Shown: in pieces, positions 3,878 through 38,444 of the stretch | Numbering within the stretch: position 1 is the stretch's first letter | Layout: the number at the start of each line of letters is the position of its first letter | Origin: Pelomyxa schiedti | Lineage: Eukaryota > Protista > Evosea | Reading direction: 5' to 3' | NCBI GenBank assembly: GCA_020536535.1 | Contig: JAHLWZ010000954.1 | Coordinates: 1-38,858, forward strand | Length of the DNA: 38,858 nt | The notes under the pieces: generated by a model | Database searches by the model: none | What the model saw: the letters and a program-made list of their open reading frames with translations, nothing else | Told to the model about the DNA's origin: nothing | Position numbers and translations under genes: made by a program

Positions 3878-3933
3878 CCCAAAAGAAAACAAGGTTTTTT
3901 TTGTTTCTTTCTCATAAAGCTCAAGGTGTTTCC

Positions 3934-6900
3934 TCAGGGCGAAGAGGCGTCAATTGTGATGGACCCAAGTTGCACTTCGGATCCTGCACTGAGGTTGGTA
4001 ATTCTAGTTGCTCTCAGTGCGGTCTCCTGCCCACGCCAATACACCCTCATCACAGCAGTGACACCATGCTGCTCGCTAGCAAAACTGGAGCACACACGGC
4101 ACACCACATTGTACACGCCCGGCGATCCCACTGCCGGCAGGACAAAGTTCTCAGGTCCGTAGGCCTCAAAGTCCCGTGTCAGGAATCCGCCCCCAGACTT
4201 GGTCCAATTACAGAACGGGCCGCATCTACCTCCCCCAGGAAGAACGACGACGAGGTCGAGATCGGTCTTGTCGCTGTTCCACTGCAACGTGATTCGCAGA
4301 AGAGGGGGGTTTGCTGGGCACTGGCCAGAGTGCTCCGATGATGCTCCCCAGGTGTCAAAAAGGGCCGAGATCTCTATTTGCTCGAATCTGTTGTCATCCC
4401 ACACTGAGTCATATGGACCTTTTGTTGTGTTGTTGTCAGTGACGACGCTGTAGCACGAGAGGGCTCTGGGTGAGTCTCCAATGTGAAAAAGCAAAATTCT
4501 GCCGAGGTCTATGTGACTCTGGGGCTCATGTGGGCAGATTCTGAGAATTCTTTCATATAGGTGAAGTGCTGTTGTGGTTTGGTTTTTGTTGGGTTTGTGG
4601 TAGGGTTAGGGGAGGGAAATTTAACAACCTTCTTTGAAGTGTTGCCACTCCTCCAGTTTGTAAGCTACCATCCTCATTACTTGGGCATCCTCAAAAGTGA
4701 TTTCCAGAGCAGAAGTCAATATGGAAACAGCATAATCAGGGTCACTTGAAAAATGTGCACTGGCTGCATCAAAAAGGTCTCCTGCACTGGAATAGTGTAA
4801 TACTGGCTGCACAGTAGTAGAAGGCGGACAGTAGGTCATCTTGAAGTTGCGTTGCGGGAGAGAGATAGCATTTGCAGGTTGTGACGATGTTGCGGATATT
4901 ATTGGACTTGCTGTACTGGGTGGTGTAGACTGTCTTGATTCTTTTGGTTCTTCAGCTGTAGCGTCACTTTGTGGACTGGAGAGATAAGCAGGGGGCACAG
5001 AAAAGGCAACTGCACGCCAGACTTCCAATGCTTGTGCTTTGTGTTTGGTTGAACTCGTTTCAACATAGTGGGCACTTCTATTCCAGGCTTCCATACGAGC
5101 ATTTAGAGTCCAACTATCGTGTTGAAAGCCCGTAAAATCGGAGTGCAGATCACATTTATTTCCCACTAAAATCTTCTGGCAATTTATGTGTGAGACGGAG
5201 CCCAAACAGTGGATAGCATGGGTATAAGTATCGGGTCTTGTAACATCAAAGACAGCCACAATGGAAGTTGGGACACCTGTCATTCCATGCTGTAATTCCT
5301 CAGAAAAAAGATGGTCAGTGAGATGGACCAATAGGGCCACTGAATTGGCCGTTTCTTGGTCGACGTATTTCCAGAATTTCATTGTATCCCCTAATGGAGT
5401 TCCTGGTGCTGGCCTTTGCCGAACAAGAAGTGAAAGAAGAGTCCTCTTTCCAACACCTTTGGCCCCCATCAGTAAAATAGTTTTTGGAACGTAACCAGTT
5501 TCGCTAGAAGTGACCTCTCGTTTGTTGAAAGAACTTTTTTTTCTCAGAGACAATCAGAACGCACATTTATCTTACCTCATCCTTTTTGAAAGCTTTTTGG
5601 CTAGGTTTGTTACATCAATGGAGCTCTTATCGAGTTGCTTAGCGAAGGAAGTTTTTCCCACTCCACTATCACCTACAATAGTCATAAAAGGGAGAGGAAA
5701 AACAATCGTAGAAAAGAACAACCAATAATAACAGCCTTGAACAAGCTAGCTTCACTGACCTGGAGAAATCTTTGATATGATTAGAGAAGTTCATGGAGCA
5801 GAAACTCTACTTCTCTAGATTTAAAGAAAGGCTAGGTCTTTCTTAGTGAATTGAAGGGAAGAGTAAATTACGTACAGTTGCACATAGAGTAATTGTAAAG
5901 CAAAATGTGTATCATATTGTTTACAGGAAATTTCACAAAAGGGAGCACCAATTCTGCGAGCAAGGTCATTTCCTTCTTCCGTAGTAACCTTTTTCGATTC
6001 TGTTTAAAATAAAAAGAGAGAGGGTGCTACCATTCTATTAGTTTCCAGGTCCCTCTTATTTCCAACGAGCACAACTCCGACAGACTCACAATTATTAACC
6101 ATCTCTTCTATCCAATGCTGTAAATTGTCGAACGTCTTCCGATTGCTGATATCTTTCCAGAGTTAGTAAAAACTAAAAGAAAATTAGTACCATATACTAG
6201 GAGAACGACATCGGTATTCCGCCAGAAGATACGAGATAGGGACATGAACCTTTCTTGCCCACCTACACAATTGCATTTAGTTGGAAAAAGTATACAGAGG
6301 AAAGTGCCTGGTTCCCATAGTTGAAGTCTACCTAGCTTATCTTCAACCTTGGTTACATACATAGTCAAATATAGCTGTGTAATTATTTTTTTTAACCTTA
6401 TATTCACACTGGTGGAAATCGGCACCTATTGTGGCCTTATACTGGTGTGAGAAACACCTAGGACCCCCATGAGCTATAATTATTGCATCTTCGGTAAGTA
6501 GTTTCACTTCATCATCAGAGAATGGACCTCCTGTAAAACCCTCAATATGCTTAGGAATTTCAGTTTCAGTATTTGGTTCTGTGTCTTTCATTGTAGTCGT
6601 TGATCCTCTTGACTCAGGAGTGGCAATGGTTCCATCAGCAATTCCCGAAGGACATAGTCCCAAAGTAATTTTTGGAGACTCTGTGCTAAGCCCCTTAAGA
6701 ACCACCTGAGGAGTGGGGTGTTTTCGGAAGGAAGCACTTTCTTTTGTGAGTTCCCATGAAGGGCCATACTGAGTGGTATCTCTTTGATTATCAGGAGTTA
6801 TGGGTTTTTCTAGTTGAGGTTTGGGGGCTTCTATTTGTTTAACTACTGCTTTTGGAACAGTGCCCTCTTTAAGAGCTCTCAAGCGTTGCACTAAGTCATC

Positions 6901-9641
6901 TTCAGCTGGCATGGATGTAAGTTGCACTGTGCCACACACGCACTGGGTGCTCAAATCCAGGCCGTGCTCATCGCATATTTGTTGCAGCAGATCATCTACA
7001 GACTCTTCTTCTTCTTCGTGTTCGGCCATTGCGTTAGCAACTACTAGTGGTGATGAAACGTCACCACTAGGGGAGAATTTCTGTAGAAGTTGAAACAGCA
7101 ATGTTGGGTATTCTGAGTTGGAGGTATCAAGACTTGAGAGTGAATGTGCGTTTTCTGAGTCCAACTTAACTGAAGGTAAAAGTTGTTGTGCTTTAAGGCA
7201 AACCACCTTTTCTCTCCTTTGCTTAAGAATCTCATGTGCGAGAACAGTGGCATCTTGCATTTTTCCTTCAGAAATGCATTTCTTTAATTTAAGACGCGTT
7301 TTTTTTTGGTTTCTCTCAATTGACATCAATGTCCTTGACAGAGATCTCTGCAGTGATTTTGTTATAAACTTGGCTTCAAAATCAGAAGGGAGAGACTTCA
7401 CTATCAGCACCGGTTCCAGCAACTGGTTATCTTCTAATGAGTCTCCTTTCATAGTCAGCAAGTTGTGGCGTTGCTTTGAGAGTGGGTTTGGGTGTGGCAT
7501 CATTATATCTTGGACCACCCTTGCCCAGACTTCGCATATTGCCAGTTTTCGGTTATGCTTTTTTTGATGGCGTAATGCTTCGTTCTGGTCCAAAAGCAAG
7601 TGATAGTTTGTGAATAATTCGGATAGGTGGAGAGGAGGTTCCACACGGTGTCTCAAAAACTGATCAACAGTGTGTAGAATCACAAAACTTGTGTGTGATG
7701 TAGCAATGTTATACTGCTTACTGACAGACATAATTTCTTTGGAAACATCTGCTCCTAGCTCCTCTTGCAGTAGCAAGTTTTTCAGTTTGAGTTGTGCCCA
7801 GAGTTGGGGAACGAGACTTTGGGAACGAATTTCATGAGGTACGTCATATGTCCGTTGTACTTCCTCCATGGCACCAGGAAGCACGAAACTCAGAGTAATT
7901 GTGGTCAGTGAGGCACACAACCCCTGGGGCAAGTGGGCAAGCCACTCTAGTTTTCCGTTTGGGGGGATTTTTGTTTTCTTTGGGAAGTCATCATCAAGGA
8001 TATGCTGAAGGTGCTGAGAGATGCCAGCAAATGCAACTCCAAGACCAAGAATGACCCTCACGATCGCCAAACAGCTGGTATTTTGTGTGATAGGGAAAAA
8101 TTGACCACCAGTTGAATCTGCCAAAGCCGATAGCACAGTGGAATTGCAGACTGGAGAGGAGCTGAATGTAAAAAATGGAATACTGGGTCTACAAACTGGG
8201 AGATTTGTGGGGCCCATTGTTGAGAAACCATCTGAGAACAGTAAATATATATCCACATCAGATGTGGTGTCCATGCTGGTGATTGACGAAAAATCAGTTC
8301 CTCCCATGTACTCTGTGGCTTCAATGTTTGCCTTCATGTTCCCCCATTCTGACATGCAGAAAGTGCCTGCCCTTTTACATGAGCCCCTGGAAAAGAAATA
8401 AAGAAGCACTTGAATTGGGTTTAGAGCCTCAACGAGTTCTCCTAAAAGTCTCACCTCCTTTCACATGTATAAGATACCTCTTAGCTGGATTTTGGAATAT
8501 ACCTGTTCTTTATTGTAACAACCGTGACTATAAGAAGAATCCCACAGAACAACAATAGACAATGGATGCTTTGTGGGAGGAGTAGCAGTCGTTGGTGGTG
8601 ATGGATCCCGAAGGAAAAGGAACAATTCTGAGTCAACATCAGACGTCTTTCCAATTACCACAGTGGGCTCTGTGACATAAGACTGGGGCACTGGAATCTC
8701 AATAGAGAGCAAGGAGCTGCGATCATGAAATGTGACAGTGTGCCCTGTTGAGCAGAGCCTGAAGATATCCAATTCCGCAGAGTTGCACTCAAAGGTTGGC
8801 ATCGCTTCATTACAAGAGATACCATGAAAACTAACAATAGGAACGTGATTCCTGTATCCCTGCACAGTCAAAGAAAGTTCAAGATTCTTGAGGACCATTG
8901 TTTCTATTGACAATGGAAGGGGTATTTCCACAAGGAGGTTACAGCTTCCACTGTCAATTTTACAAATATAAGTTATTGAAACCTGTCTTGTACAACCAGG
9001 ATTAAATGGATGTCTTGTGAGGGTAAACAAAAAAAAGTATTCTGGAAGAGAGTGTACATTTTAATGTTGTACAAGTTTCCACCAGACACATTCTGGAGGA
9101 CACTGGAATCCTTCCCCTCTCTTGCTTCAGTCTCAAATGCAACTTTCGCCTTTCTTGGGGGTAAAAGCTGACAAAGGAAAAAAATCTGTGTACTTTTTCT
9201 TTCGTACATAAAACAGCATCAAGCATGGTGCCATCTGGCAGATCAACGGCATATCCACAAACAGATGAACCTAGAAATTTCCCAGCATATAGTGTTACTT
9301 TCATACTTCCAATATCACACATAAAGCTGCCCCAATTGCACTATAGTTGCTAATATCACGCATAAATATCTATCTACTCAACTTAACCCACTTCGCCTCC
9401 CATAATTCCCACACCCTGCAGCCCCAAACACACCCTCCGGCAGCGGAAACATCGCCTCGCCGGTCCAGTCCCCAGACGACGCCGATTTCTCAGAAGAGGG
9501 CGCCTCCGATGGGTTGTGGGAAAACTCGCACGAGATTTGCACTCGTGACATGCCAACAGCAACATCCACAAACGCAGTTGCTTTCACCTTGGTAGCAGCG
9601 AAAATTCGCCCACAGCACACAACAGACATTACGCTCTCCAT
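3934..9641 (-). CDS. Multidomain protein (~1,665 aa, ~14 exons): VIT - vWA - ESCRT-III/Snf7 - permuted Rab-like GTPase - degenerate Ras-like GTPase - TPR - DUF2135/YfaP
   Basis: Exons 9641-9434, 9270-9194, 9149-9058, 9013-8503, 8457-6397, 6347-6308, 6262-6191, 6152-6031, 5988-~5872, one small exon with two in-frame splice options, ~5760-5723, 5672-5576, 5533-4629 and 4568-3934 have consistent phases. Motifs: FPLPEG|SSVCGYAVD, KEK|AKVAFE (VIT); VVLWDSSYS, YMGGTDF, LLFSDG (vWA); QLWAQLKL...TSHTSFVIL; EPQSHIDLG (TPR); LRITLQWNSDKTDLDL...YGPENF (DUF2135). Confidence 0.85.
5005..5485 (-). other. Second, degenerate Ras-superfamily GTPase domain inside the 3934-9641 gene
   Basis: KTILLMGAKGVGKRT (P-loop with R where S/T is expected), VAVFDVTRPDTY, ILVGNKCDL (G4) and YVETSS (G5). 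No DxxG motif is recognisable. Confidence 0.75.
5620..6461 (-). other. Rab7-like GTPase domain with G-motif order G2-G3-G4-G5-G1
   Basis: Spliced sequence: FSHQYKATIGADF (G2), LQLWEPGGQERF (G3), VLVGNKRDL (G4), FCEISCK (G5), then [17 protein letters not shown] (G1/P-loop, split by the intron 5722-5673). Confidence 0.75.
6868..7380 (-). other. ESCRT-III (Snf7 family, CHMP1/Did2- or CHMP2-like) domain inside the 3934-9641 gene
   Basis: FEAKFITKSLQRS...KLKKCISEGKMQDATVLAHEILKQR resembles CHMP1 helices 1-2. EESVDDLLQQICDEHGLDL resembles helix 5, and DDLVQRLRALK resembles a MIM1 motif. All lie within the continuous ORF 6343-8454. Confidence 0.8.
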
Positions 9642-9708
9642 GGCTTTTCACGAAGCCAAAAAAAAACGGATTCCGTGAACAGGAGGAAGTTTTGATGAGT
9701 TTGGTTTA

Positions 9709-11458
<1,750 letters not shown>

Positions 11459-11596: not shown

Positions 11597-14584
11597 ATGG
11601 CGACGTCGCAATCACGACTGCAGTACAGCGGACAAGCCGGTGCCGTGCACAGGCAAGATCTCTACTACTACGTTTATTGCATATATGGGACTGAATGCGT
11701 TTTTATTTTTACATGGCTTTTTTTTTTTTTCTCCACGCACATAAGATGGGAACTAACGAGCAACATAGTTATTCTCGCGAAGAATTAGAAGGCGTTGTGG
11801 ACCACTTGAATACAGTTCTGGGGAACGATGATCTTTTGAAGTGTGCCACTTTTGATAAGCAAGGCATAATTAACTTTTTTCCCCACTCCTTTCAGGTCAG
11901 GGAAGCTACCTTTTGCGAGAATCCCTCTTAACCCAAAAAGTGATGACGTCTTTACTGCCATGAAGGACGGTGTCATCATGTGGTCTGTAATACCTTTCAT
12001 TTCCTATTCCATGACAATGCTTGGGCAGCAAATTCCTTGATACACTCACACCTCCTGGACAACCTCCATTATGCCAAGGCTGCTGTCTTAAACCAAACAT
12101 GAATATTTACCACATGCACGAAAACAACTTGAGGGTACTTGCAGCAGCTCAAAAATTGGGCCTCAGCCTCACGAACATTGGTGCCGAAGATTTAGACTCT
12201 GCCAGAGCCCCTCATATCCTACTCAGTCTACTGTGGCAATCCACTGCTGTGAGTTTTGTGTGAAACGTTTGGTCACTTCCAACTATCAATAGCTTGACCT
12301 AAGGAAACAAGTGCAAAATGCTGTAAAGACACATGATACCTCTATACTTCTCAAAGAAAACGAAGATAAATCCGCTATTGGACATCTTGTTATTGAAGAG
12401 ATTCTTCTGCGATGGTAATCTTATTTGAAATCCCAATTGCGTTCCAACAAGGAAAAATAAAGGTTCAATTATCACTTGGCGAAAACAAATACACCACCTA
12501 TCAATAACTTCGATACTGATCTACAAGTGCTTACTTCTATAAGCTATTTCTCCTTTGTGAATAACCTTGTAGGATAGTACAAAACTTATTATTCTTCTCA
12601 ATGCACTGGAACCAAAACACTGCACGAAAGCTCCCCTCACGGAGGCTGATCTCTCAAGGAGAGCAGAATTGATGCTCCAGGAAGCGGAAAAAATTGGGTG
12701 TAGAAAGTTTGTCAATCCCAGTGATATCTTGCATGTAACTATAAATTACATTTATTTATTTCTTAGTGTTTCCTTCTAGGGCAATACGAGGTTAAATTGT
12801 ATGTGTTCGGGTATTCTTCTTTCATTTACCTTTTCTAAGTTGGGTTTATTGCAAATCTATTTTCCAAGTATCCTTCTATGACAGAGCTTCCACCCACTCC
12901 TGAACCCCACCAGGTCACCCCAAGTGTGACCCCTCCAACTCCAGCACTAGTTGTAATGCCCGCCACACTCGTTGGCACATCAACTCCCACAACAACTACA
13001 CCAACTGTTACTCCTACTCCTACTCCTACACCTGCACCCACACCAACCCCCGCTTCCGTCCCAGGTTGCCTGTTTCTCCCATTTTATATTGCTCTAAATC
13101 AATGTAGAGGCACCCCCTTCCTATTCCTCATTACTTGGATCTGATGCCTTGAAATCTTTTGTTGTCCCTGAGAATGTTTCCCGCCAGGGTAAGGTGACAT
13201 TTAGTAAGTCCACTTTATTAATATGATTTCAGAAGCACCACCATCTTATTTACAAGCTATGCAATCTCTGCCCCCAACTACTCCCACAGTGGACTATCAG
13301 CAAGCCCTTCAAAACTTTCAGCAGCAACAGCTTTTACAACAACAACAACAACAACAAAAACTCTTACAGGAGGAACAGCAAAAACAACAGCTCCTTCAAC
13401 AACAACTCTTACAGCAGCAGCAACAACAACTCTTACAGCAGCAACAGCAGCAACTCCTGCAACAACAACAGCAGCAGCAACAACAACAACTCTTGCAGCA
13501 GCAGCAACAGCAACAGCAACAACAATGGAACCAGACTTCACAGTACACACAGCCACCCTATCCAGCACAGCCTCCTTCACCATATGCCCAACCACCCTCA
13601 ACATATCCACCACAGCAACCACCCTACCCGTATCCTTACCCCTCACAACCAACATACCCCCCTCAGCAGCCATATGGGGATCAGTATGGTGCCTATGGGC
13701 AACAGTGGGCCGCACAAACAGCAATGCAATCTAGAGGACTGAAATTCTTCGAAGATTTGAAGAACTCCCTTGCTCGAAAATACACTATGTATATCTCCTG
13801 AGCACTCCTAATATGTAATTTCCCTTTCAGTGTGATTGATATGAGCCAGTCGATGCTGTCTCAAGTTGGTGGAGTTTCTCGGTGGAAAAGTGCTCAGCAA
13901 GCTGTTGGTTTGTTTCTTCTTTTCTCCAAGAAAAACAAATTTACACCCTATAGCATACATGGCGCCATTCGCCATTCGGGCAGATCCGGTTGGCATTACC
14001 CTGTGGTTCTTTTCATCAGGTCCAAAGTTCTTCAAGCATTCTAACATCCAAGGTTGCTCCGAACTAAACGGGCTTTATTTTAATAGTTCACAGATGTAAA
14101 TGAAATCTACAGGCTATTTTCTCAGTATACTCCCCATGGAACCACAAATCTGGATGGAGTATTACGATGTGTGTTTGCTGACCATTTCACCACAAATGCG
14201 CGCAGACCAGAGACAGTGTTGGTTGTAACTGATGGTGAGCCTGATTCACATGTTGCTGTCGAGGGTGAAATCGTGACTTGCACCAAGTTATTGCAGACAA
14301 GAGAGGAACTGAGTATATCCTTCATCCAAGTAAGCGAATCACCACCTACATTAGTCATAAAACACAGCACTAATTACCCAAAGGTGGGAGATGACCCAAG
14401 GGCTACTGCCTTCCTTGACTATTTAGACAATAACCTCGTTTCACGGGCCGGAGCTGTATTAGATATTGGTCTCTACCCCTCCTGTTTTCTAAAACTAACT
14501 TCCTCCACAGTGGACACCAAAACTGTTGGTCGCATGATGGGAATGTCCTTTGAAGCCTTTATCTACAAGTCCCTAACCAGTTAA
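11597..14584 (+). CDS. Fimbrin/plastin-type actin-binding domain (CH-CH) + Pro/Thr- and Gln-rich linker + C-terminal vWA domain
   Basis: CH motifs: EQHSYSREE, MKDGVIMC, LTNIGAEDL..HILLSLLWQ, EEILLRW, FVNPSDI, GFIANLFSKYP. vWA after splicing: KYTI|VIDMSQSM (DxSxS), PHGTTNL, ETVLVVTDGEP, SISFIQ|VGDD..AT.FL..LD, DI|VDT. Stop at 14582-14584. Confidence 0.8.
13320..13525 (+). repeat. CAG/CAA polyglutamine-coding tract with (Q)nLL periodicity
   Basis: Repeated caa/cag codons interrupted by ctctta/ctcctg, inside ORF 13223-13801. Confidence 0.95.
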
Positions 14585-19600: not shown

Positions 19601-22600
19601 TGTTGATGAAGGGTGAGTGAATGACTCGAGTTAAGTTATGAATGACCTTTGCTACAACAGAATCCAGGTGAGATAGCCCAGCAAGGAGTATGTTTGGGCT
19701 TTTTAAATCTCTGTGGATTTGAGGAGGCGTTGAGTCATGTAAGAAGCGCATAGCACAGGCGATATCCATGGCTATCTTAAGCACTAGTGGGAACGGGAGT
19801 GGGTTGCTTTCTCCACCATTATACTGGTTGTGTATGTAGTTGTACAGATCTCCATGGGGAACAAATTCTGTTACAATACAAAGCGGACTCAGGCATAAGC
19901 CAATAAGTTCAACGATGCAGGGGTGTTTAAGACCACTAATGGTGGTTATAAGGTTTTATTTATGTGTTTACCTCATAACCCAAACTTCTCTTTGAAATTC
20001 GGCAAACTTCGAGTCACTGTGTGGGGAATCCCTCTTTGACTTCAGTTGTTTGACCGCTACAATCTTGTTGGTTACTGTCCATGTAGCTTTGTAAACAACA
20101 GCAGCACTTCCTGGTATACAGTGATTGGCTTACTTCTCCCTTTGGGTAACGTACCTTCACCAATAACTGCACCAAGCTTCAAATCTGAAAATGAGAGTTT
20201 GTCTGCATTACATGTACTCATTGAAAATTCGGGTACCACAACACTTGTGGCAATAGGGTGGATCCCAGAGCAGTAAAGAAAGGGATCTCCCTGTGTTATA
20301 AGTGTCAAGGAGAAGGAAGAAATGAGACCATACTTTCAGTGCAGCATTTTCACAGTCGCTGACTGGGAAAAGATATGGTGGGGAATTAGGATGACTTGTT
20401 TGACAATGATAGCACGGAATGAAGACTTGAGGTTTCTGGAAATACCAAGAGTGAGCATTCGTTAACAAAAAAAGAGTTCTAACTTACCACACCCAAATCT
20501 GCAAACAAAGACGTCAAGCAATCATATACAAAACGTGATAGTACATCTGGCATAGGAGCTCTTACATCAACCGCTACAGTTGACACATCTGCCAACAAAT
20601 GAACCAGGATTGTTTCCAAATCCTTTTTCAGAAAAGCAGATTCTTTCCACATATAAAGCACAGTAGTGTGTGAATCGGAGGCAACACGAGCCTTGGTGAA
20701 AGTAAATCTCTGAGAGTTTGGGTTGTTGCTTACCAGAAATAGGTTCATAATATTGTGTGGTACATGAGGATTGAAAACAAAACGTCTCCCAGTTTGAGTA
20801 AGTTGTGATCCAGGGCCTAGGGAAGGCCAGAGGCTTGATCTTTTGGGGGGGTGAGCTAAATTTAAAGTCAGGAGTTAATACATTTGCGTGGGAGGTGAGG
20901 ATGGGAGTAACGAAGGGACAAGAAATATAGGTTCAGAAAGGGTACAATTCTAGAACAATTGTTAAAAAAGTAGTTGTATCGCCTAAAAAGAAAGGTACCA
21001 CAATTTTTAGGATGAGTTGATGCTTTATGAGAAGTTGGCAGAAAATGGGGTAGAGCTTTTTTGGATATGTGGGGTCTTTGTCCCAGAAGGAGGTGATGTT
21101 CTCAGTAGTGAGGAGAGCAGAACCAAAAATCGATGGCAATGGCGTGGATAACGATATGAGCTGAACAAGCCACTGCCACATGTTAAGGAAAAAAATGAAA
21201 ATAATAAAAAGACCTGATTGTCAATAACAATGAAATCAAAAAAGGTATTATCACCAGCAGTAAAGTGAACTGTTCCCGCTTCACAAAGATACTCTACTGC
21301 TTGTCTTTGAGCTGTGTCATCCCTGGAAGAATGTTAAAACGTTCAAGAGATTAGGAGGAAAGGGCTGGGTTCTCTACGTGATTGCACAAACGGATGCTAG
21401 TGCAGAAAAATCTAACCAAGACAGCACAGGCGGTTTAAAAACTGATCTATGTCTGTCAACATATTTGTCTAGTGTTACAAAGACCCGAGGAACAGAGAAG
21501 GTCATTCGTCTTTGGTCAGCTAGCTTGGTAATCAGGAGTTGAATATAGGCACGTAACCTGGGTTTGAATTGGAGGTGGTACAGATTGAGAGTTATACTTT
21601 GAAAAACCCTTCATTGTTGGAGGACTTATGGCAACTGAGCCACAAATATTGGGGAACTGTTGTTGAAGTCGTAGAAACAAATTTCCCTTCAATGAAGCTA
21701 GTTCAGATGGGGAAAGCCTGTGATGAAAGAGAAAACATCAGCGAAGGTTCGAGTTAGTGGTAGGAACTTTTCTCTATGAGTAGCAACGAACAAAATTGGC
21801 ACAATAGGCCCGTGCTTGTAAATGAGAGAAAGCCATTCTTCAACTTGAGACACATTCACTGGCTGTGAAATATCACACACAAAAATGACGACAACATTAT
21901 TTGAAAGGAAAGGTCGTGATGTATAGAAGCCAGCTTCAAGTATCAGTGTTAGGGAGGCAGATGCCAAGTCACAAACCAGATCCTGAAAATTCCCATACAT
22001 GCAGTATTCCCGAGTGATGTCGGTGGCCATTTTCTTGTCTTTCAGAAAAATTAATCGGAATTCTCCATTCCTCTTATCAAAGTGAGTGTATGGTAAAATG
22101 GTTGCCTTTGTTACCATAAGTAGCAAGAGCATATTTCCGTTGTTTGTGTGTCAGAGCTATTTTGTCTCTAATACAGTTGAGCATTGCCGTTTTGCCTACG
22201 GAAGAACTGCCAAGCTAAAGGAAATTATTGTTGGACGCGTGATGATAAGACACACCACAAGGACTCTTTTTTGAATTATATTGACTTTTTCAGAGCCATT
22301 GCTGTGTAGAAAAGATAACAGTGGCCCCACTGGCATTACAGCAAAGTCCTTTGGGGGCCATATCAAATTACTTTTCCCGTTTCCCACAAGCTTGAGGCAC
22401 TCCAATTTGCTGAGGTATCCGATTGTAGGAGGTATCTCTTCAAAAAGGTTGTCCTGCAGTTCCAGAATTTTCAAATTCACCTTTTTTTTTTTTTAGATAC
22501 TAGTAGAAGTGGGTAGGAATACCAATTGACCAATGGATGCCGGGACATAACTTATTTTGTTACTATGCGCTCGTAATATGCGCAGCTCACACAGGCAATT

Positions 22601-25600
22601 TATACCCACAGGGAGCTCCTGTATGTCATTGGCACTTATGTCCAGATTCATTACAGTAGACATTTTGAGAATCACCTGGTTTGTGTCAAAGATATTAGTA
22701 AGAATGATGTATACATTGGGAAAAGTGGCAAAGGCATTGCCGGAAATATTCAATGATTTCAAGTAGACGAGCGATGTGAAGTCATTGGGTAATTCATCAA
22801 GAAAATTCAAGGAAATATTTAATCTGAAAAAACCACTTAAGAAGTGTTTCAAATAAGGAATCGACAAACGATTGCAAGACGGCAAAATCAGTCCAAGAGG
22901 ATGGATAGAATGCTAATCCAATGGAAGATGCATTCAGATCCTGAATTACTGGAGCAAATGCTGGCAATGTCTTCGAGAGGCCACTAATATGTTGCCTACT
23001 GATATTCAACTGAAAGAAGGTATTAAAATTGCTTGTTTTTTATCAAGAGATGTGCCACACTCGGCATAGATGTCTACAGTTCCCCAAAGAAGCTGGAAAT
23101 GATGCAAGCTTGCCTACTGAAACGTCTAGAATCTATTTATTACATAAATTTTAGGAAGAACACGTCTACAAAACCTTTAATTCGACAAGAGAGAGTGTAG
23201 AAGGAAGACAAACAAGAGGGTTGGACGAAATAGAAAAGTCAATCAGGAATTTTTGATGACTTTCCATAAGCCGAAACACTTCATCAGAAATGTGGTTAAT
23301 GTTATTTGAACTAAACAGTGATCAAAAATAGGGCACTGTAGGTTACAAAGTACCTCAAATTAAGCTTTCTCAGATTGGGTAGGTACAGAATAGCAAGAGG
23401 AAATGTGTTCAAGTTATTTCCACTTAAATCAAGCACATTCAAATTCTCAGTGAGAGGAAACACAAATTCTCCATGAACAGTATTTGGAAGGAAGAACATA
23501 TTACGATTCTTCAATTCAATGCTGGGGCAATTGAAGGATGAGAGTGGAGGATCCAGTTGCTTTATTTGCCTTTTGATATGGCGGATTGAGGAAACAAACT
23601 CTACTCCATATAAGTTTCTGAACACGATCTCTACTTGGTACCTTTTTGGATGGCAGAATTCCACCTAAACAAGAGGAAATTCCAAAGGGAACACTCAGAA
23701 AATGACACCGTGATTCGCAGAATATTGTCCTGAGTTTCTCCCATGTACAAGGTATTTTTGTATTGCTCCAAATTTGTTAATGAGAGCAGATAATCCCAAA
23801 ATGATTGCTTGTCTCTGTTGGCACGCCAGAGTTCACTCTGAGAATTTCCAAGTAAGACATGAATACAAAAGCATAAGTTTAACAAGTAAACCTCATTGGT
23901 ATGGGAGAAAGTGCCAAAACGTTGTGAGTTGAAAGCGTCTATCACAGTAAGAAGAAAGTCCTCATTAAACTCAAAGTACTGTGGATACTCCTGGTTTCAT
24001 TTTGAGAAGGATGAAATACAGTGCTGTGGAATACTTGGAAAATATTCCATATGAGGAAGATGAACTACAAAATTGAGTCATAGGAAAAGAGTATAGAGTA
24101 TGGGAAAACCTGCAGGAAAATCATGAATAAAGATGAATCACTGAAAGGAAAGCCGAAGCTTCCCCACTGTCTGTCTATTAATTGACCAAAACTGTTTGAG
24201 CATTACTTTAAAATTGTTGTTGTCTGTACAGACCCAGAAAGTGTTCTGAAGTCAGAACTGAGTACTACTTGAACGGCACTCAGGATGCAACAGTCAACAT
24301 CACAATGTCTACTTACTGGACTACTGTTTTCTATGATGACCGAACTTCCCCCCAAAATCATTGTTGTTACAGTGGAGACCGCTTTGGCCAATTGTTTGAG
24401 TTGAACAACCCACATCCTGTAGGAAATGGGAACGCAAGAAAGGAAGAGGGATACTAACTGAATCGATTCTTTCTGATACATAATCGCATCTGTTTCCTCG
24501 AATCAAGTCAGTTGAACAGTAGCAGGTAAAAAATTTTACTAGGTCACGAAGTTCCAAGTATCCCTCCCGCACTTCTGCAGCAGTAGGAGCCTCGAGATAA
24601 CAGCAATTTTGTGATTGAAGGGTCCCAGTACAGGGCTGAATGGAGCAGTCCACCTCAGTTTGGGTGTTACCATGGCTGCCAGTTTTTGCAAATACAACTT
24701 TAGAAATGCCAGCCTTCTGAAGAAACTCTGTAACCTGAGAAGGGAGGTAAGTGGGTATCCTAGGAAGGATTACATACAGATTCTTTTGCATCAGAAAATG
24801 AACTGCTGAATGAAGTAAGAAGAAAAGCTTTGGATTCAGCACAGAAAAAAACAGGTACAGGGAACCTGGGTTCTTTTACACCCTATTCTCCTTAAGGGAA
24901 AAATTACATGGATACCTGGAATGTAACCAACGAGAGGCATTTCTTTCTATCCATTCATCAGTCATTACTGTTGGAGTAATCAGCATGGAAGGATAAGTGG
25001 AGCATATCGTGTATCGCAAGTTAACTTGGGTTAACTTCACAGAAGTTAAGAAAGCCACACAAGGGACAAATTTACCCTCCAAGATGTTACCCCGCTACTT
25101 TGAAGTTGTTTCAGTATCACATAAGAGCTTCCTTCTTCAATTTGTTCTTCGCGTGTACTGCCAACTGGGGGTTCCACTTTTTGTCCCCCTCTTTTTCGTT
25201 TAGAAATATTGGAGATGAATTCTTTCTACCTATTAACAATTTCCAAAAAGTGAGAGTACTCAGAGTGCTCAGTGAAGCGTTGTGGGAAGCGAACAAATAT
25301 AGTGCGGAAGTCTTTACATATGATTTTTATTTCAGGAAAATAACCAGTGGTGTGTGCAGTTGAGACAGCAACATTAAATATACTTGAGAGTGAAACCTCT
25401 AACTGTGTTTTAAGTGAGTTCGAACATTGACCCACAGTTGATCACCTGCTTTTCCAGAGTTGTGTATGTCATACTGTCCACCAGATATTTGAAGCACAAA
25501 CGGTAATTTGTGCACCACGCTTCACAGCAGCGTCCTTCATCTTCTTTTGCGGGATTTGTACAAATGACATTACTAACTGATAGGAGTATTTGTTCATTTG

Positions 25601-36269: not shown

Positions 36270-38444
36270 ATGCTGCGCAGAGCGACCGCGAAACCGGGGC
36301 GTGGCCGACGAGGCCGGGAACAAAGCGGCAAGGGGGACCCGCAGGCGCCAAGTGCGAGTCCACTCCAAAGGGAAGCGGACCGGAGCCCGTCGCGGGGACG
36401 CCGCGGTTCTAGAGCCGCAACAGAGGGAGAGGAGGGGCGGCGTGGGGTGAGGTGCGTCCCGCGGTGCCCGGGCTCTCGCCCCACCGGGAGGGGCCGGGGC
36501 AGGGCCAGTCCCAGCGCCGCTCGTTCGCCGACTACGGCTGCGGCTACTGTGACTGCGGCGAACTCGGGGGGCCCGGGGATGAAGGGTTATTTCTACGATC
36601 CTGTGAAGAACCGGTACTTCAAAGTGGGTGCACACTTGCCAGTTTTTCGTTACTACATTCGTTGTGTATCTAATAATGGCTTCTTCGTTGTTTTTGGATA
36701 ACCGTTAATTGCCAGATTGATAAGGACCACCCAGCTCCGAAAATTGAAGTACCCAAGCCTGCACCACCACATAAACCACGCAACTCTCTTATCAAGCTTC
36801 TATGCACTCAACAAATGGGAGTTCGTTCTACATCACCGGCTGCATTGCAATCACATCTCCGCAGTGCCCTACTGGAATCTCGCTTCCACAACAATTCAGC
36901 TTGCACTGAGACATGTCAAACAACCACCACGAAAACCTACCGGGATAGTTCACGCTATGTCTCATTCACAGTTGGATACGGCCAAGACATTCTTCACACT
37001 ACAGGCGGAACTATAACTTGCATTGCCCAGTCTTCTAAACAACTGAACTGCGACGCCCCATCTTCCAGGCTCATTATTGGCACAAGTTCAGGCCATATTG
37101 CGTCTCTTACTCCGCGTATTACAAGTGGCGGGATCCCAAACCTTCTGGAGAATGCCTGTTTCCCATCTCATGTGTCAAACACGTCCGTCGGAGCATTGGG
37201 ACCGGTGTGGACACTGAAATGGACCCCTCGTTCCGGTGAGGGTATATTTCTTGCAGGATTCCTTGGAGGGACGCATCCTGGTATAACAAAGTGCCATTCC
37301 TGCCTTGACTGTTTGTATATTTAACGGTTTTCCATAGGACAAGCAAATTTAATGCAAGTCACAAGTGAAGGATGTAAATCACTCTTAGAGATGAAACTTC
37401 AGCAGGGTACTCTATGGGACTGTGAATGGTTAGACAACTCTGGTGCTCTCACTTCTGGGCGAGGACTTCTCCTCTATGACATCACCACGTGAGTATAAAA
37501 ATTAATTTGATGTAGGTGACTCACTCGTTCACCCATTGTCTTTTAGGAACAAAGCACTCCGGTCTCTGAAAGGCACCTCAAGTGAAGTGGTCCAGCTTTC
37601 TACTGCCAATACAGTATCCGCCCTGCTTGCCGGTTGCAGGAATGGCACTGTCTCACTTGCAGATACCCGGGACCCTCGAGGATTCCAAGGATTGATGTGC
37701 CAAACTCCGGGCCAAGTTTGTGCCATGCAAGTTCTGACCCTATCTCCGTGGAATTTCATAGTCAGCTCCACGAACAACCACTTGGCCATGTGGGACCTGC
37801 GATTCCCCGCCTCCGCCTCGTCATCATCATCAACAGCAACAACATCACCACCCCCCCCACCACCACCAACAACAACAACATCATCATCCCCATCACCATG
37901 CAAGAGTAATACGAGGCAAGTGGTGGTGGAATACAGCGGGCACGTGAACTCCCACGCCACCCACGCGCACCTCTCGCTGTTCATGGGGGAGTCGCTGGTC
38001 AGCAGCGGCAGCAGTGACGGCCGCGTCCGCCTGTGGGATGTGCTCTCGGGCAAGCAGATGTGCCAGGACGCGTTCGCCCCGCCGCTGCGGCCGAGCGCGA
38101 GCGGGAGCGGGAGCCCCGGCACCGGCGGCTCGGGCGGGGGAAGCGGCAGCATGCTCGAGTGCGTGTCATTCTGCCACCTGTGGGAGTTTGGCTCTGCGGT
38201 GGAGGACTACTTTGCGTGGCGGCAGCAGCAGGAGCTGGTGAGGCTGCGGCACTCGGCGCTCAGCGCGGCGCACAGGGTGTGGGGCCAGGGCTTGGAGGGG
38301 GACCCGGACTCGCCCATGGCGCTGAATGACGACGAGTGCGGCCTCGGCCTGGCTCGGTCAGAGCCGATGCAGTGGGATGGATTGTGGGTGGCTACCCCCG
38401 GGCACCTCAATTTCCTGCCTCTGTGGGACAACGACCGGGTTTAG
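36270..38444 (+). CDS. DCAF4: DCAF4/WDR21-like WD40 protein (DDB1-CUL4 substrate receptor); alternative start at 36579
   Basis: Arg-rich N-terminus, then GYFYDPVKNRYFK, the DCAF4-type helical box. WD repeats LLAGCRNGTVSLADTR, LAMWDLR, YSGHVNSH and SGSSDGRVRLWD. Stop at 38442-38444. Confidence 0.75.

Follow-up and report, generated by a model that had tools for sequence, protein, structure and literature searches.

The window analysed here, a stretch of 38,858 nucleotides of DNA from Pelomyxa schiedti, contains on its minus strand a gene for a long composite protein in which the domains of a bacterial-type scaffold enclose a cassette of eukaryotic modules. The deposited protein, P0023, has 1614 residues and its gene model uses positions 3937-9322 (minus strand), and the structure of the whole gene comes from the exon map of P0023 together with RNA contigs. 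The parts of the gene are as follows.

3934-9641, minus strand: whole gene, for a VIT-vWA-(CHMP1-like, permuted Rab, second GTPase)-TPR-DUF2135 protein
9378-9641, minus strand: probable extra 5' exon, ending FPLPEGV, that matches the bacterial VIT domain over its first half
7471-9322, minus strand: N-terminal part of the scaffold (aa 1-573) with VIT, vWA and helical vWA tail
7381-7470, minus strand: short linker ahead of the module (aa 574-603), past the end of the bacterial alignment
6868-7380, minus strand: CHMP1/Did2-derived ESCRT-III module (aa 604-774), from sequence, ESM-feature and structure comparisons
6535-6867, minus strand: flexible linker behind the MIM1 (aa 775-885, 111 residues; 66% disorder-promoting, 22% hydrophobic)
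5578-6534, minus strand: GTPase module of Rab type in which the P-loop follows G5 (aa ~886-1101, intron-split; Pfam Ras 157.6 bits)
4969-5535, minus strand: second GTPase module, Ras-like and divergent (aa ~1102-1290; the ORF 4621-5553 scores 31.6 bits with Pfam Ras)
3937-4806, minus strand: C-terminal part of the scaffold (aa 1345-1614) with TPR and DUF2135/YfaP_C

Gene Model and Expression

An original prediction, made from the sequence of the window, had placed an ESCRT-III domain in the middle of a large protein, and the gene model and transcripts bear this out. The translation of 6868-7380 (minus strand) is identical to residues 604-774 of P0023, and the module is in frame within a 703-codon ORF (6343-8454, minus strand). 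The gene is expressed, as shown by spliced single-cell RNA contigs, in which GT..AG introns are present on the minus strand at 8457-8501, 5987-6028, 5671-5720, 5534-5575, and 4569-4628. One RNA contig (7313-8315) connects the vWA part with helix 1 of the module without a splice and others (6808-7129) cross helix 5 and the MIM1 into the following linker; both borders of the module are crossed by RNA contigs, and in none of those examined is the domain spliced out. The entire stretch is also covered by one DNA contig of an independent assembly. A foreign or recent insertion was considered and discarded, as the GC content of the module (0.42) and its GC3 (0.37) are about those of its flanks.

A Bacterial-Type Scaffold With Eukaryotic Modules

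The scaffold follows the order VIT, vWA with MIDAS, TPR, and DUF2135, in two blocks that can be aligned with the bacterial protein P0033, the closest scaffold relative examined, which lies in a bacterial gene neighbourhood. Residues 18-573 of P0023 align with 81-601 of P0033 (E 4e-45) and residues 1345-1577 with 728-956 (E 6e-19). The MIDAS motif DxSxS of the vWA domain is intact (DSSYS, aa 232-236), and the score of the VIT domain in the deposited protein (25.0 bits against a Pfam cut-off of 26.5) is explained by a deposited N-terminus that was cut short. A word-index search seeded with the first 500 residues of the scaffold gave 83 matches besides P0023, all of VIT plus DUF2135 architecture; those listed were bacterial proteins, with no Pelomyxa paralogue among them. 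The scaffold is probably cytosolic. It had been argued that vWA proteins often act as AAA+ adaptors and that this one might do so; the protein does contain a vWA domain, but within a VIT-vWA-TPR-DUF2135 scaffold and not as one of a MoxR-type pair, which leaves the argument as an analogy. Our literature search found no paper on DUF2135.

The CHMP1-like module occupies the hypervariable linker of the scaffold and has the two GTPase modules behind it. The first of these matches Rab1, Ypt6, Ypt7, and Rab7 in the PDB, all at about 1e-27, and since these matches are about equal, a late-endosome theme that would have joined CHMP1 with Rab7 was dropped. The second gave no PDB sequence match at 1e-3.

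Assignment of the Module to CHMP1/Did2

The CHMP1/2-like helices, helix 5, and MIM1 of the original prediction are recovered by independent sequence comparisons, in which CHMP1 is the closest subfamily. In a phmmer search of PDB sequences the top match is CHMP1B, with residues 8-170 of the query aligned to 12-195 of the chain, from helix 1 to the MIM1 (E 9.5e-6); CHMP1B scores 29.3 bits, CHMP1A 15.3, and CHMP2A 14.9, and no further ESCRT-III family appears at E<=1. BLASTP aligns the module end to end with the CHMP1 protein P0027 at 27% identity (E 2e-14), and the local alignment score of 151 compares with 34 +/- 6 for 1000 composition-preserving shuffles, a difference of about 20 SD. The only ESCRT-III matches in a library of 1.84 billion proteins are two true CHMP1s, which themselves match CHMP1B at E 1e-42 and 1e-45, and all 30 nearest clusters by ESM features are Snf7. 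The closest ESCRT-III subfamily of the module is thus CHMP1/Did2/Vps46, from both the PDB ranking and the two library matches.

A check against the Pfam Snf7 model (PF03357), which had been suggested with the original prediction, fell short of the threshold. Helices 1-2 are matched (profile positions 10-79, to which the match is limited), but the score is 20.6 bits for the module piece (171 residues) and 14.2 for the ORF, below the cut-off of 27.3. The true CHMP1s P0027 and P0025 score 41.7 and 31.0 bits, which indicates that this model is weak for the CHMP1 subfamily. Hence the Snf7 threshold was rejected as a sole criterion, and the ESCRT-III assignment is kept on account of the strong evidence from the other sequence comparisons and the low Snf7 scores of the true CHMP1s.

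Judged by its sequence, then, the module genuinely derives from ESCRT-III, is of the CHMP1/Did2 kind, and is not a generic coiled coil. That it is nevertheless such a coiled coil, or a chimera of assembly or annotation, in either case unrelated to ESCRT-III, is a very improbable reading, although helical hairpins do match many folds at Z ~7 and the genome was derived from amplified single cells (PMC8887013). The matches are specific to CHMP1, span all of the helices and stand far above the shuffles, which refutes the coiled-coil alternative raised with the original prediction, and the independent DNA contig and the RNA contigs across both borders argue against a chimera; the reading is refuted as far as evidence of this kind allows. 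The text of the genome paper (PMC8887013) does not contain ESCRT, and our literature search found nothing on ESCRT in Mastigamoeba.

The module has no counterpart among the long proteins covered by our searches. A word-index search limited to aa 560-800 returned P0023 alone, the exhaustive phmmer search of the 1.84-billion-protein library gave no long relative, and a metagenome scan gave 599 pattern matches of which none was confirmed. Hence no orthologue or paralogue carrying the module was found in these protein and metagenome searches, and the combination of an ESCRT-III module with a VIT-vWA scaffold was found nowhere in the databases or literature searched.

A Conserved C-Terminal Part and a Shortened Middle

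The module is made up of the following parts.

7270-7386, minus strand: helix 1 (aa 602-640), strongly basic with net charge +8; AlphaFold helix 8-46
7171-7260, minus strand: helix 2 (aa 644-673), with 30 residues where the CHMP1 control has 40 (AlphaFold)
7003-7170, minus strand: helix 3-4 region (aa 674-729), shortened and Pro/Ser-rich, in which short stretches of helix are left (aa 678-685 and 694-705)
6952-7002, minus strand: helix 5 region VDDLLQQICDEHGLDL (aa 730-746), acidic; helix 137-147 with pLDDT ~84
6868-6903, minus strand: MIM1 EDDLVQRLRALK (aa 763-774), an exact fit to [DE]xxLxxRLxxL[KR]

Conservation is very uneven along these parts. Identity to CHMP1s is highest in helix 5 (41-53%) and the MIM1 (54%), is 26-33% in helix 1, and is lowest, at 18-23%, across helices 2-4 (18-20% for the helix 3-4 region alone). 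The piece from helix 5 to the MIM1 aligns with the CHMP1B 148-197 peptide of PDB 3eab (E 0.0027). TAL-effector matches to the same piece were rejected as an artefact of a chance likeness of ETVQRLLPVLCQAHGL to ESVDDLLQQICDEHGL, since there are about 20 repeats that each add ~1 bit. Residues 602-673 carry a net charge of +10 and residues 674-774 one of -14, giving the basic N-terminal and acidic C-terminal halves of ESCRT-III proteins.

The original prediction had also described the helix 3-4 region as shortened, and measurement agrees. The span that begins at the Phe conserved in helix 1 and closes with the final MIM1 Leu is 170 residues long, against 192 in P0027, and the shortfall maps to the region from the C-terminal part of helix 2 to helix 4, which has 65 residues (including 4 Pro and 11 Ser) against 82. 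The AlphaFold model has all six helices, following one another as in CHMP1, with a mean pLDDT of 69 that is 79-92 in the hairpin and drops to 43-49 in the helix 3-4 region. Helices 2, 3, and 4 have 30, 8, and 12 residues, as against 40, 15, and 15 in a true CHMP1 that was folded as a control with the same 3-sequence alignment as the module. The open, polymerizing form of ESCRT-III proteins such as CHMP1B and Snf7 requires helices 2 and 3 to be fused into one long helix. By predicted helix lengths, the full-length helices 2-4 for such an extended conformation are absent from the module.

Comparisons of the predicted fold give ESCRT-III proteins as the top matches, but with scores that fall in the chance range for helical hairpins. 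The best 16 Foldseek matches are all ESCRT-III, yet at E of only 1e-2 and with a model from a 3-sequence alignment; with VIA the closed N-terminal domains of IST1, the best of the matches that extend over most of the model, are found at Z 8.5 over 122-128 aligned residues, about 0.6 above unrelated hairpins; and the best match in the ESM Atlas is CHMP2a-like (TM 0.49).

These data allow us to weigh the possibility that the module is a decaying relic, a piece of CHMP1 captured by chance that has no function and whose reading frame is kept only because the protein needs the TPR-DUF2135 part behind it. Its sub-threshold Pfam score, its overall identity of 27%, and its eroded middle are what such a relic would show, and no orthologue was found that could reveal constraint, but the decay is uneven, with helix 5 well above the middle in identity and the MIM1 consensus complete, and the amphipathic helices and the asymmetry of charge have been kept. 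We therefore regard a relic as rather improbable.

The MIM1 Motif

The MIM1-like motif reported in the original prediction is retained at every one of its consensus positions within the 12 residues of EDDLVQRLRALK, the consensus being D/ExxLxxRLxxL[K/R] as quoted in PMC11998489. The pattern occurs nowhere else in the six-frame translation of the contig, and 8e-4 occurrences are expected per protein of this composition. The motif follows helix 5, is aligned with the MIM1 of CHMP1B, P0027, and P0025, and is predicted by AlphaFold to be helical with low-confidence linkers on either side. A published parallel is the baculovirus ESCRT-III mimic Ac93, whose MIM1 still bound Vps4 and Vta1 with a tag fused behind it (PMC11998489).

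Discussion

We tentatively propose, with a confidence somewhat short of even, that the module is a non-polymerizing mimic of CHMP1 that would present its MIM1 to MIT-domain proteins (Vps4, Vta1) or to IST1. The module would have arisen by capture of CHMP1 (Did2/Vps46), a late-acting ESCRT-III subunit, and would be a reduced copy of it placed in the middle linker of the scaffold. The filament building of a normal subunit appears to have been lost, given how short, rich in proline, and weakly conserved helices 2-4 are, and the module would remain in the closed form, with helix 5 and the MIM1 offered as a binding-competent mimic to proteins that recognize the C-terminus of CHMP1. The scaffold and its GTPase modules may thereby be tethered to the machinery of ESCRT-III disassembly, or that machinery may be titrated.

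The opposite proposal is that the module joins ESCRT-III filaments as a cap, poison, or anchor, and so links the vWA scaffold to the polymer. The basic hairpin of helices 1 and 2 is retained with good predicted confidence, all six helices are predicted to be present and in order, and the conserved helix 5 contacts neighbouring protomers in CHMP1B filaments, which is why its conservation is by itself no argument against polymerization. Helix 2, however, lacks 10 residues, helices 3-4 are about half to four-fifths of the normal length and contain 4 Pro, it is precisely the helix 2-4 region where identity is lowest, and the bulky flanks on both sides would probably impede packing into a filament. 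Co-assembly thus seems to us quite improbable. The conservation of helix 5 and the MIM1, taken together with the short, poorly conserved helix 2-4 region and the likeness to a closed fold, favours presentation of an MIT/IST1 site over co-polymerization.

A further possibility concerns the purpose of the module. Displayed in a variable loop, the module might act as a bait or decoy that intercepts or senses foreign factors directed against CHMP1 or ESCRT-III, such as those of intracellular bacteria. A copy that is poor in function yet predicted to be competent in binding would suit a mimic of this kind, it lies at a hypervariable linker site beside a Rab with an unusual order of motifs and a degenerate second GTPase, and P. 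schiedti lives with many prokaryotic endosymbionts (PMC10579272). On the other hand, the scaffold yielded no output or signalling domain, and the scaffold-seeded search described above listed no paralogue from Pelomyxa. We also know of no effector that targets CHMP1 in amoebae, and consider the bait or decoy reading unlikely. We give a similarly small chance to a wider form of it, in which a family of cytosolic scaffolds of bacterial derivation, specific to this lineage, would hold out in a hypervariable loop host-protein copies that are inactive but still able to bind, for surveillance or control of symbionts, much as integrated decoys do. The bait or decoy reading follows the principle of integrated decoys, or that of the bait region of a macroglobulin. 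Our literature search found nothing on integrated decoys in amoebae.

If the module is indeed a binding-competent CHMP1 mimic, it would represent a natural separation-of-function variant, in which the parts for contact with MIT domains of the Vps4 type are kept and those for filament growth are shortened. It would also let the recruitment or titration of Vps4 by an internal MIM1 be tested directly and, together with the GTPase modules, it hints at a possibly undescribed re-use of copies of the amoeba's own trafficking proteins.

Comparison With Known Systems

The likeness to the integrated decoys of plant NLRs, in which a copy of a host target is carried within a sensor, is conceptual and applies only to the bait or decoy reading; P0023 is not homologous to these proteins and has no NB-ARC, LRR, or known output domain. 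Ac93, the small viral ESCRT-III mimic with a MIM1, shows no detectable relationship with the module and serves as a functional precedent only. The bacterial VIT-vWA-TPR-DUF2135 (YfaP_C) proteins, for example those of Chryseobacterium and Flavobacterium, have the same domain order as the scaffold and align with it at 27-28% identity both before and behind the cassette, but they have ~930-1200 residues and a linker of ~126, in place of which P0023 has a cassette of eukaryotic modules of 772 residues.

With CHMP1A and CHMP1B (Did2/Vps46 in yeast), which are late ESCRT-III subunits, the module shares the order of six helices, the basic hairpin, the acidic C-terminal half, a helix 5 of the VDxLLQQxxDEHGL type, and an exact MIM1 of the C-terminal type. 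CHMP1A and CHMP1B, however, are stand-alone proteins of ~200 residues, as to our knowledge ESCRT-III subunits almost invariably are, whereas the module is internal to a protein of at least 1614 residues, is only ~27% identical to them, lacks ~17-22 residues in helices 2-4, which are rich in Pro and Ser, and carries ~840 residues behind a MIM1 that in CHMP1A and CHMP1B is C-terminal. A precedent for an ESCRT-III fold that works as one part of a larger protein is provided by CHMP7 and IST1, the latter in its closed form being the closest structural match of the module model. In CHMP7 and IST1 the fold is terminal and polymerizes, and the partners are ESCRT-related; in P0023, by contrast, it sits between a vWA scaffold and GTPase modules.

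CHMP1 Ancestry of the Internal Module

Sequence similarity establishes CHMP1 ancestry for the module at residues 604-774 of P0023, the 1614-residue deposited protein encoded by the scaffold gene. Its best match among PDB sequences is CHMP1B (E 9.5e-6), in an alignment reaching from helix 1 as far as the MIM1, followed by CHMP1A and CHMP2A, and no other ESCRT-III family was found there at E ≤ 1. BLASTP against P0027, a true CHMP1, gave 27% identity end to end (E 2e-14), the local alignment score stands about 20 standard deviations over 1000 same-residue shuffles, and all 30 language-model feature clusters were Snf7 (score 0.93). Besides P0023 itself, phmmer run exhaustively against 1.84 billion proteins yielded two matches to repeat proteins and two to ESCRT-III proteins; both of the latter are true CHMP1s (E 1e-42 and 1e-45 to CHMP1B). 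The original prediction of an internal ESCRT-III domain is therefore confirmed, and a generic coiled coil is ruled out since the similarity is CHMP1-specific and covers the whole length. The Pfam Snf7 profile (PF03357), suggested as a check, scored 20.6 bits, below its 27.3-bit cut-off, and matched helices 1-2 only. No orthologue of the module-bearing protein was found by the phmmer search, a protein word-index search or a metagenome scan.

Identity of module segments to two CHMP1 proteins
Helix 1: 26-33%
Helix 2: 20-23%
Helix 3-4 region: 18-20%
Helix 5: 41-53%
MIM1: 54%

That the module is a decaying relic is unlikely because conservation is so uneven along it. Measured from the conserved Phe in helix 1 to the final Leu in the MIM1, the module is 170 residues long, versus 192 in P0027, and the deficit lies in the helix 2C-helix 4 region (65 versus 82 residues), in agreement with the shortened helix 3-4 region noted originally. 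This region has four Pro and 11 Ser, versus two Pro and seven Ser in P0027. The hallmark charge split is retained: the hairpin carries a net charge of +10 and the part behind it −14.

Gene Structure and Expression

The module is translated without stops from window 6868-7380 (minus strand), in frame within a 703-codon ORF, 6343-8454 (−), which is the largest exon of the gene. NCBI names the product 'TonB-dependent receptor [Pelomyxa schiedti]', a name backed by none of the domains found. Within 3900-9700, RNA contigs (not raw reads) from a single study, covering three single-cell libraries, support five short introns with GT..AG ends:

8457-8501 (−), intron
5987-6028 (−), intron
5671-5720 (−), intron
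5534-5575 (−), intron
4569-4628 (−), intron

One RNA contig (7313-8315) joins the vWA part to helix 1 of the module without a break, and two others (6808-7048 and 6908-7129) likewise join helix 5 and the MIM1 to the linker behind. Because these contigs cross the module borders, and one DNA contig from another run spans the entire stretch, the fusion is not an assembly or annotation artefact. The scaffold gene with its embedded module is expressed, and splicing-out of the module was not seen in the RNA contigs covering 3900-9700. RNA differs from DNA at 4357 (A>G, in both RNA runs covering the position) and at 7524 (C>T, in one low-depth RNA contig). Alleles, errors or editing may account for these differences; the study lists its RNA and DNA runs under different samples.

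P0023 as deposited is probably truncated at its N-terminus, as the ORF 9378-9641 (−), upstream of its start, appears to encode the first half of the VIT domain that P0023 lacks; the product of this ORF ends in FPLPEGV and aligns with residues 38-82 of P0033, a bacterial VIT-vWA-TPR-DUF2135 protein. No obvious signal peptide is present at the start of this product, which would fit a cytosolic scaffold protein.

Other ORFs of the window are as follows:

9709-10077 (−), final exon of a same-strand gene for an ADP-ribosylglycohydrolase (Pfam 41.5 bits), immediately upstream of the scaffold gene
13223-13801 (+), very long Gln/Leu-rich low-complexity run, then a Pro/Tyr/Gln-rich tail; no Pfam match
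22493-22885 (−), leucine-rich repeats, an ordinary eukaryotic neighbour
37536-38444 (+), WD40 protein, likewise an ordinary eukaryotic neighbour

No ESCRT- or MIT-related neighbours were present among the window ORFs scanned against Pfam.

A Bacterial-Type Scaffold with an Enlarged Linker

P0023 aligns with P0033, whose gene neighborhood is plainly bacterial, over residues 18-573 (28% identity, E 4e-45) and 1345-1577 (27%, E 6e-19), and its vWA domain retains the DxSxS MIDAS motif. The VIT-vWA-TPR-DUF2135 architecture was found in all 83 scaffold-search matches besides P0023 itself. In the bacterial proteins the linker is about 126 residues long, whereas P0023 has 772 residues in its place, which hold the CHMP1-like module and, behind it, two GTPases, one Rab-type and the other divergent. 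Across 52 aligned bacterial homologues no part varies more than this linker, where identity is 22-29% and each 50-residue bin holds 15-172 residues.

5578-6534 (−), Rab-type GTPase module, P0023 residues ~886-1101; P-loop GDSGVGKT located after G4/G5
4969-5535 (−), second GTPase-like module, residues ~1102-1290; normal P-loop GAKGVGKRT, Pfam Ras 31.6 bits

The Rab-type module has a degenerate IIIAHGGPRC at the usual P-loop place and WEPGGQE as G3, and its PDB matches are spread across Rab1, Ypt6, Ypt7 and Rab7. The second module had no match among PDB sequences at 1e-3.

Predicted Fold

An AlphaFold2 model of the module, built from a three-sequence alignment, has a mean pLDDT of 69 (79-92 in the hairpin) and helices at 8-46, 50-79, 84-91, 100-111, 137-147 and 170-180, where residue 1 is P0023 residue 595. 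Folded with the same alignment as a control, P0027 has the same helix order, with helices 2, 3 and 4 of 40, 15 and 15 residues (pLDDT 84-95) versus 30, 8 and 12 in the module; comparison with this control therefore indicates that the predicted topology is kept and helices 2-4 are shorter. The original prediction went further in proposing that the protein may co-polymerise with or cap ESCRT-III filaments. That interpretation is partly supported: the module's CHMP1 derivation and intact MIM1 within a vWA scaffold stand, but the short, proline-rich helices 2-4 make co-polymerisation or capping less likely.

The top 16 Foldseek matches are all ESCRT-III (CHMP1B, archaeal CdvB, CHMP3 and IST1), with E values of only 1e-2. 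An exhaustive structural aligner placed two closed IST1 domains first (122-128 residues aligned, model residues 6-155), with a Z of 8.5 that is only slightly over unrelated hairpins, and the best ESM Atlas match was a CHMP2a-like cluster (TM 0.49). The modeled structure thus agrees with the sequence evidence and alone would not carry the ESCRT-III case. TAL-effector structure matches (summed E ~1e-6) were rejected as misleading: helix 5, ESVDDLLQQICDEHGLD (6952-7002 (−), residues 729-745), resembles the repeat core ETVQRLLPVLCQAHGL by chance.

The MIM1 Motif and a Proposed Role

The MIM1-like motif that had been noted, EDDLVQRLRALK, matches the consensus D/ExxLxxRLxxL[K/R] (PMC11998489) at all positions. 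It is the sole consensus match in a six-frame translation of the contig, and about 8e-4 matches are expected per protein of P0023-like composition. Low-confidence linkers flank it in the AlphaFold2 model, and the 111 residues that follow are 66% disorder-promoting. MIM1 motifs dock, in helical form, into a groove of the MIT domain. In the baculovirus mimic Ac93, a tag fused behind the MIM1 did not abolish binding to Vps4 and Vta1 (PMC11998489). Given this binding mode and the Ac93 analogy, function of the MIM1 at an internal position is plausible.

We infer that the module is a CHMP1 mimic that would stay closed, without polymerising, and would present helix 5 and the MIM1 either to proteins with a MIT domain (Vps4, Vta1-type) or to IST1. 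That it serves as a bait or decoy seems doubtful, at perhaps one chance in a few. Overall, the scaffold is of bacterial type and holds a slimmed CHMP1 module, internal to the chain, whose MIM1 is intact.
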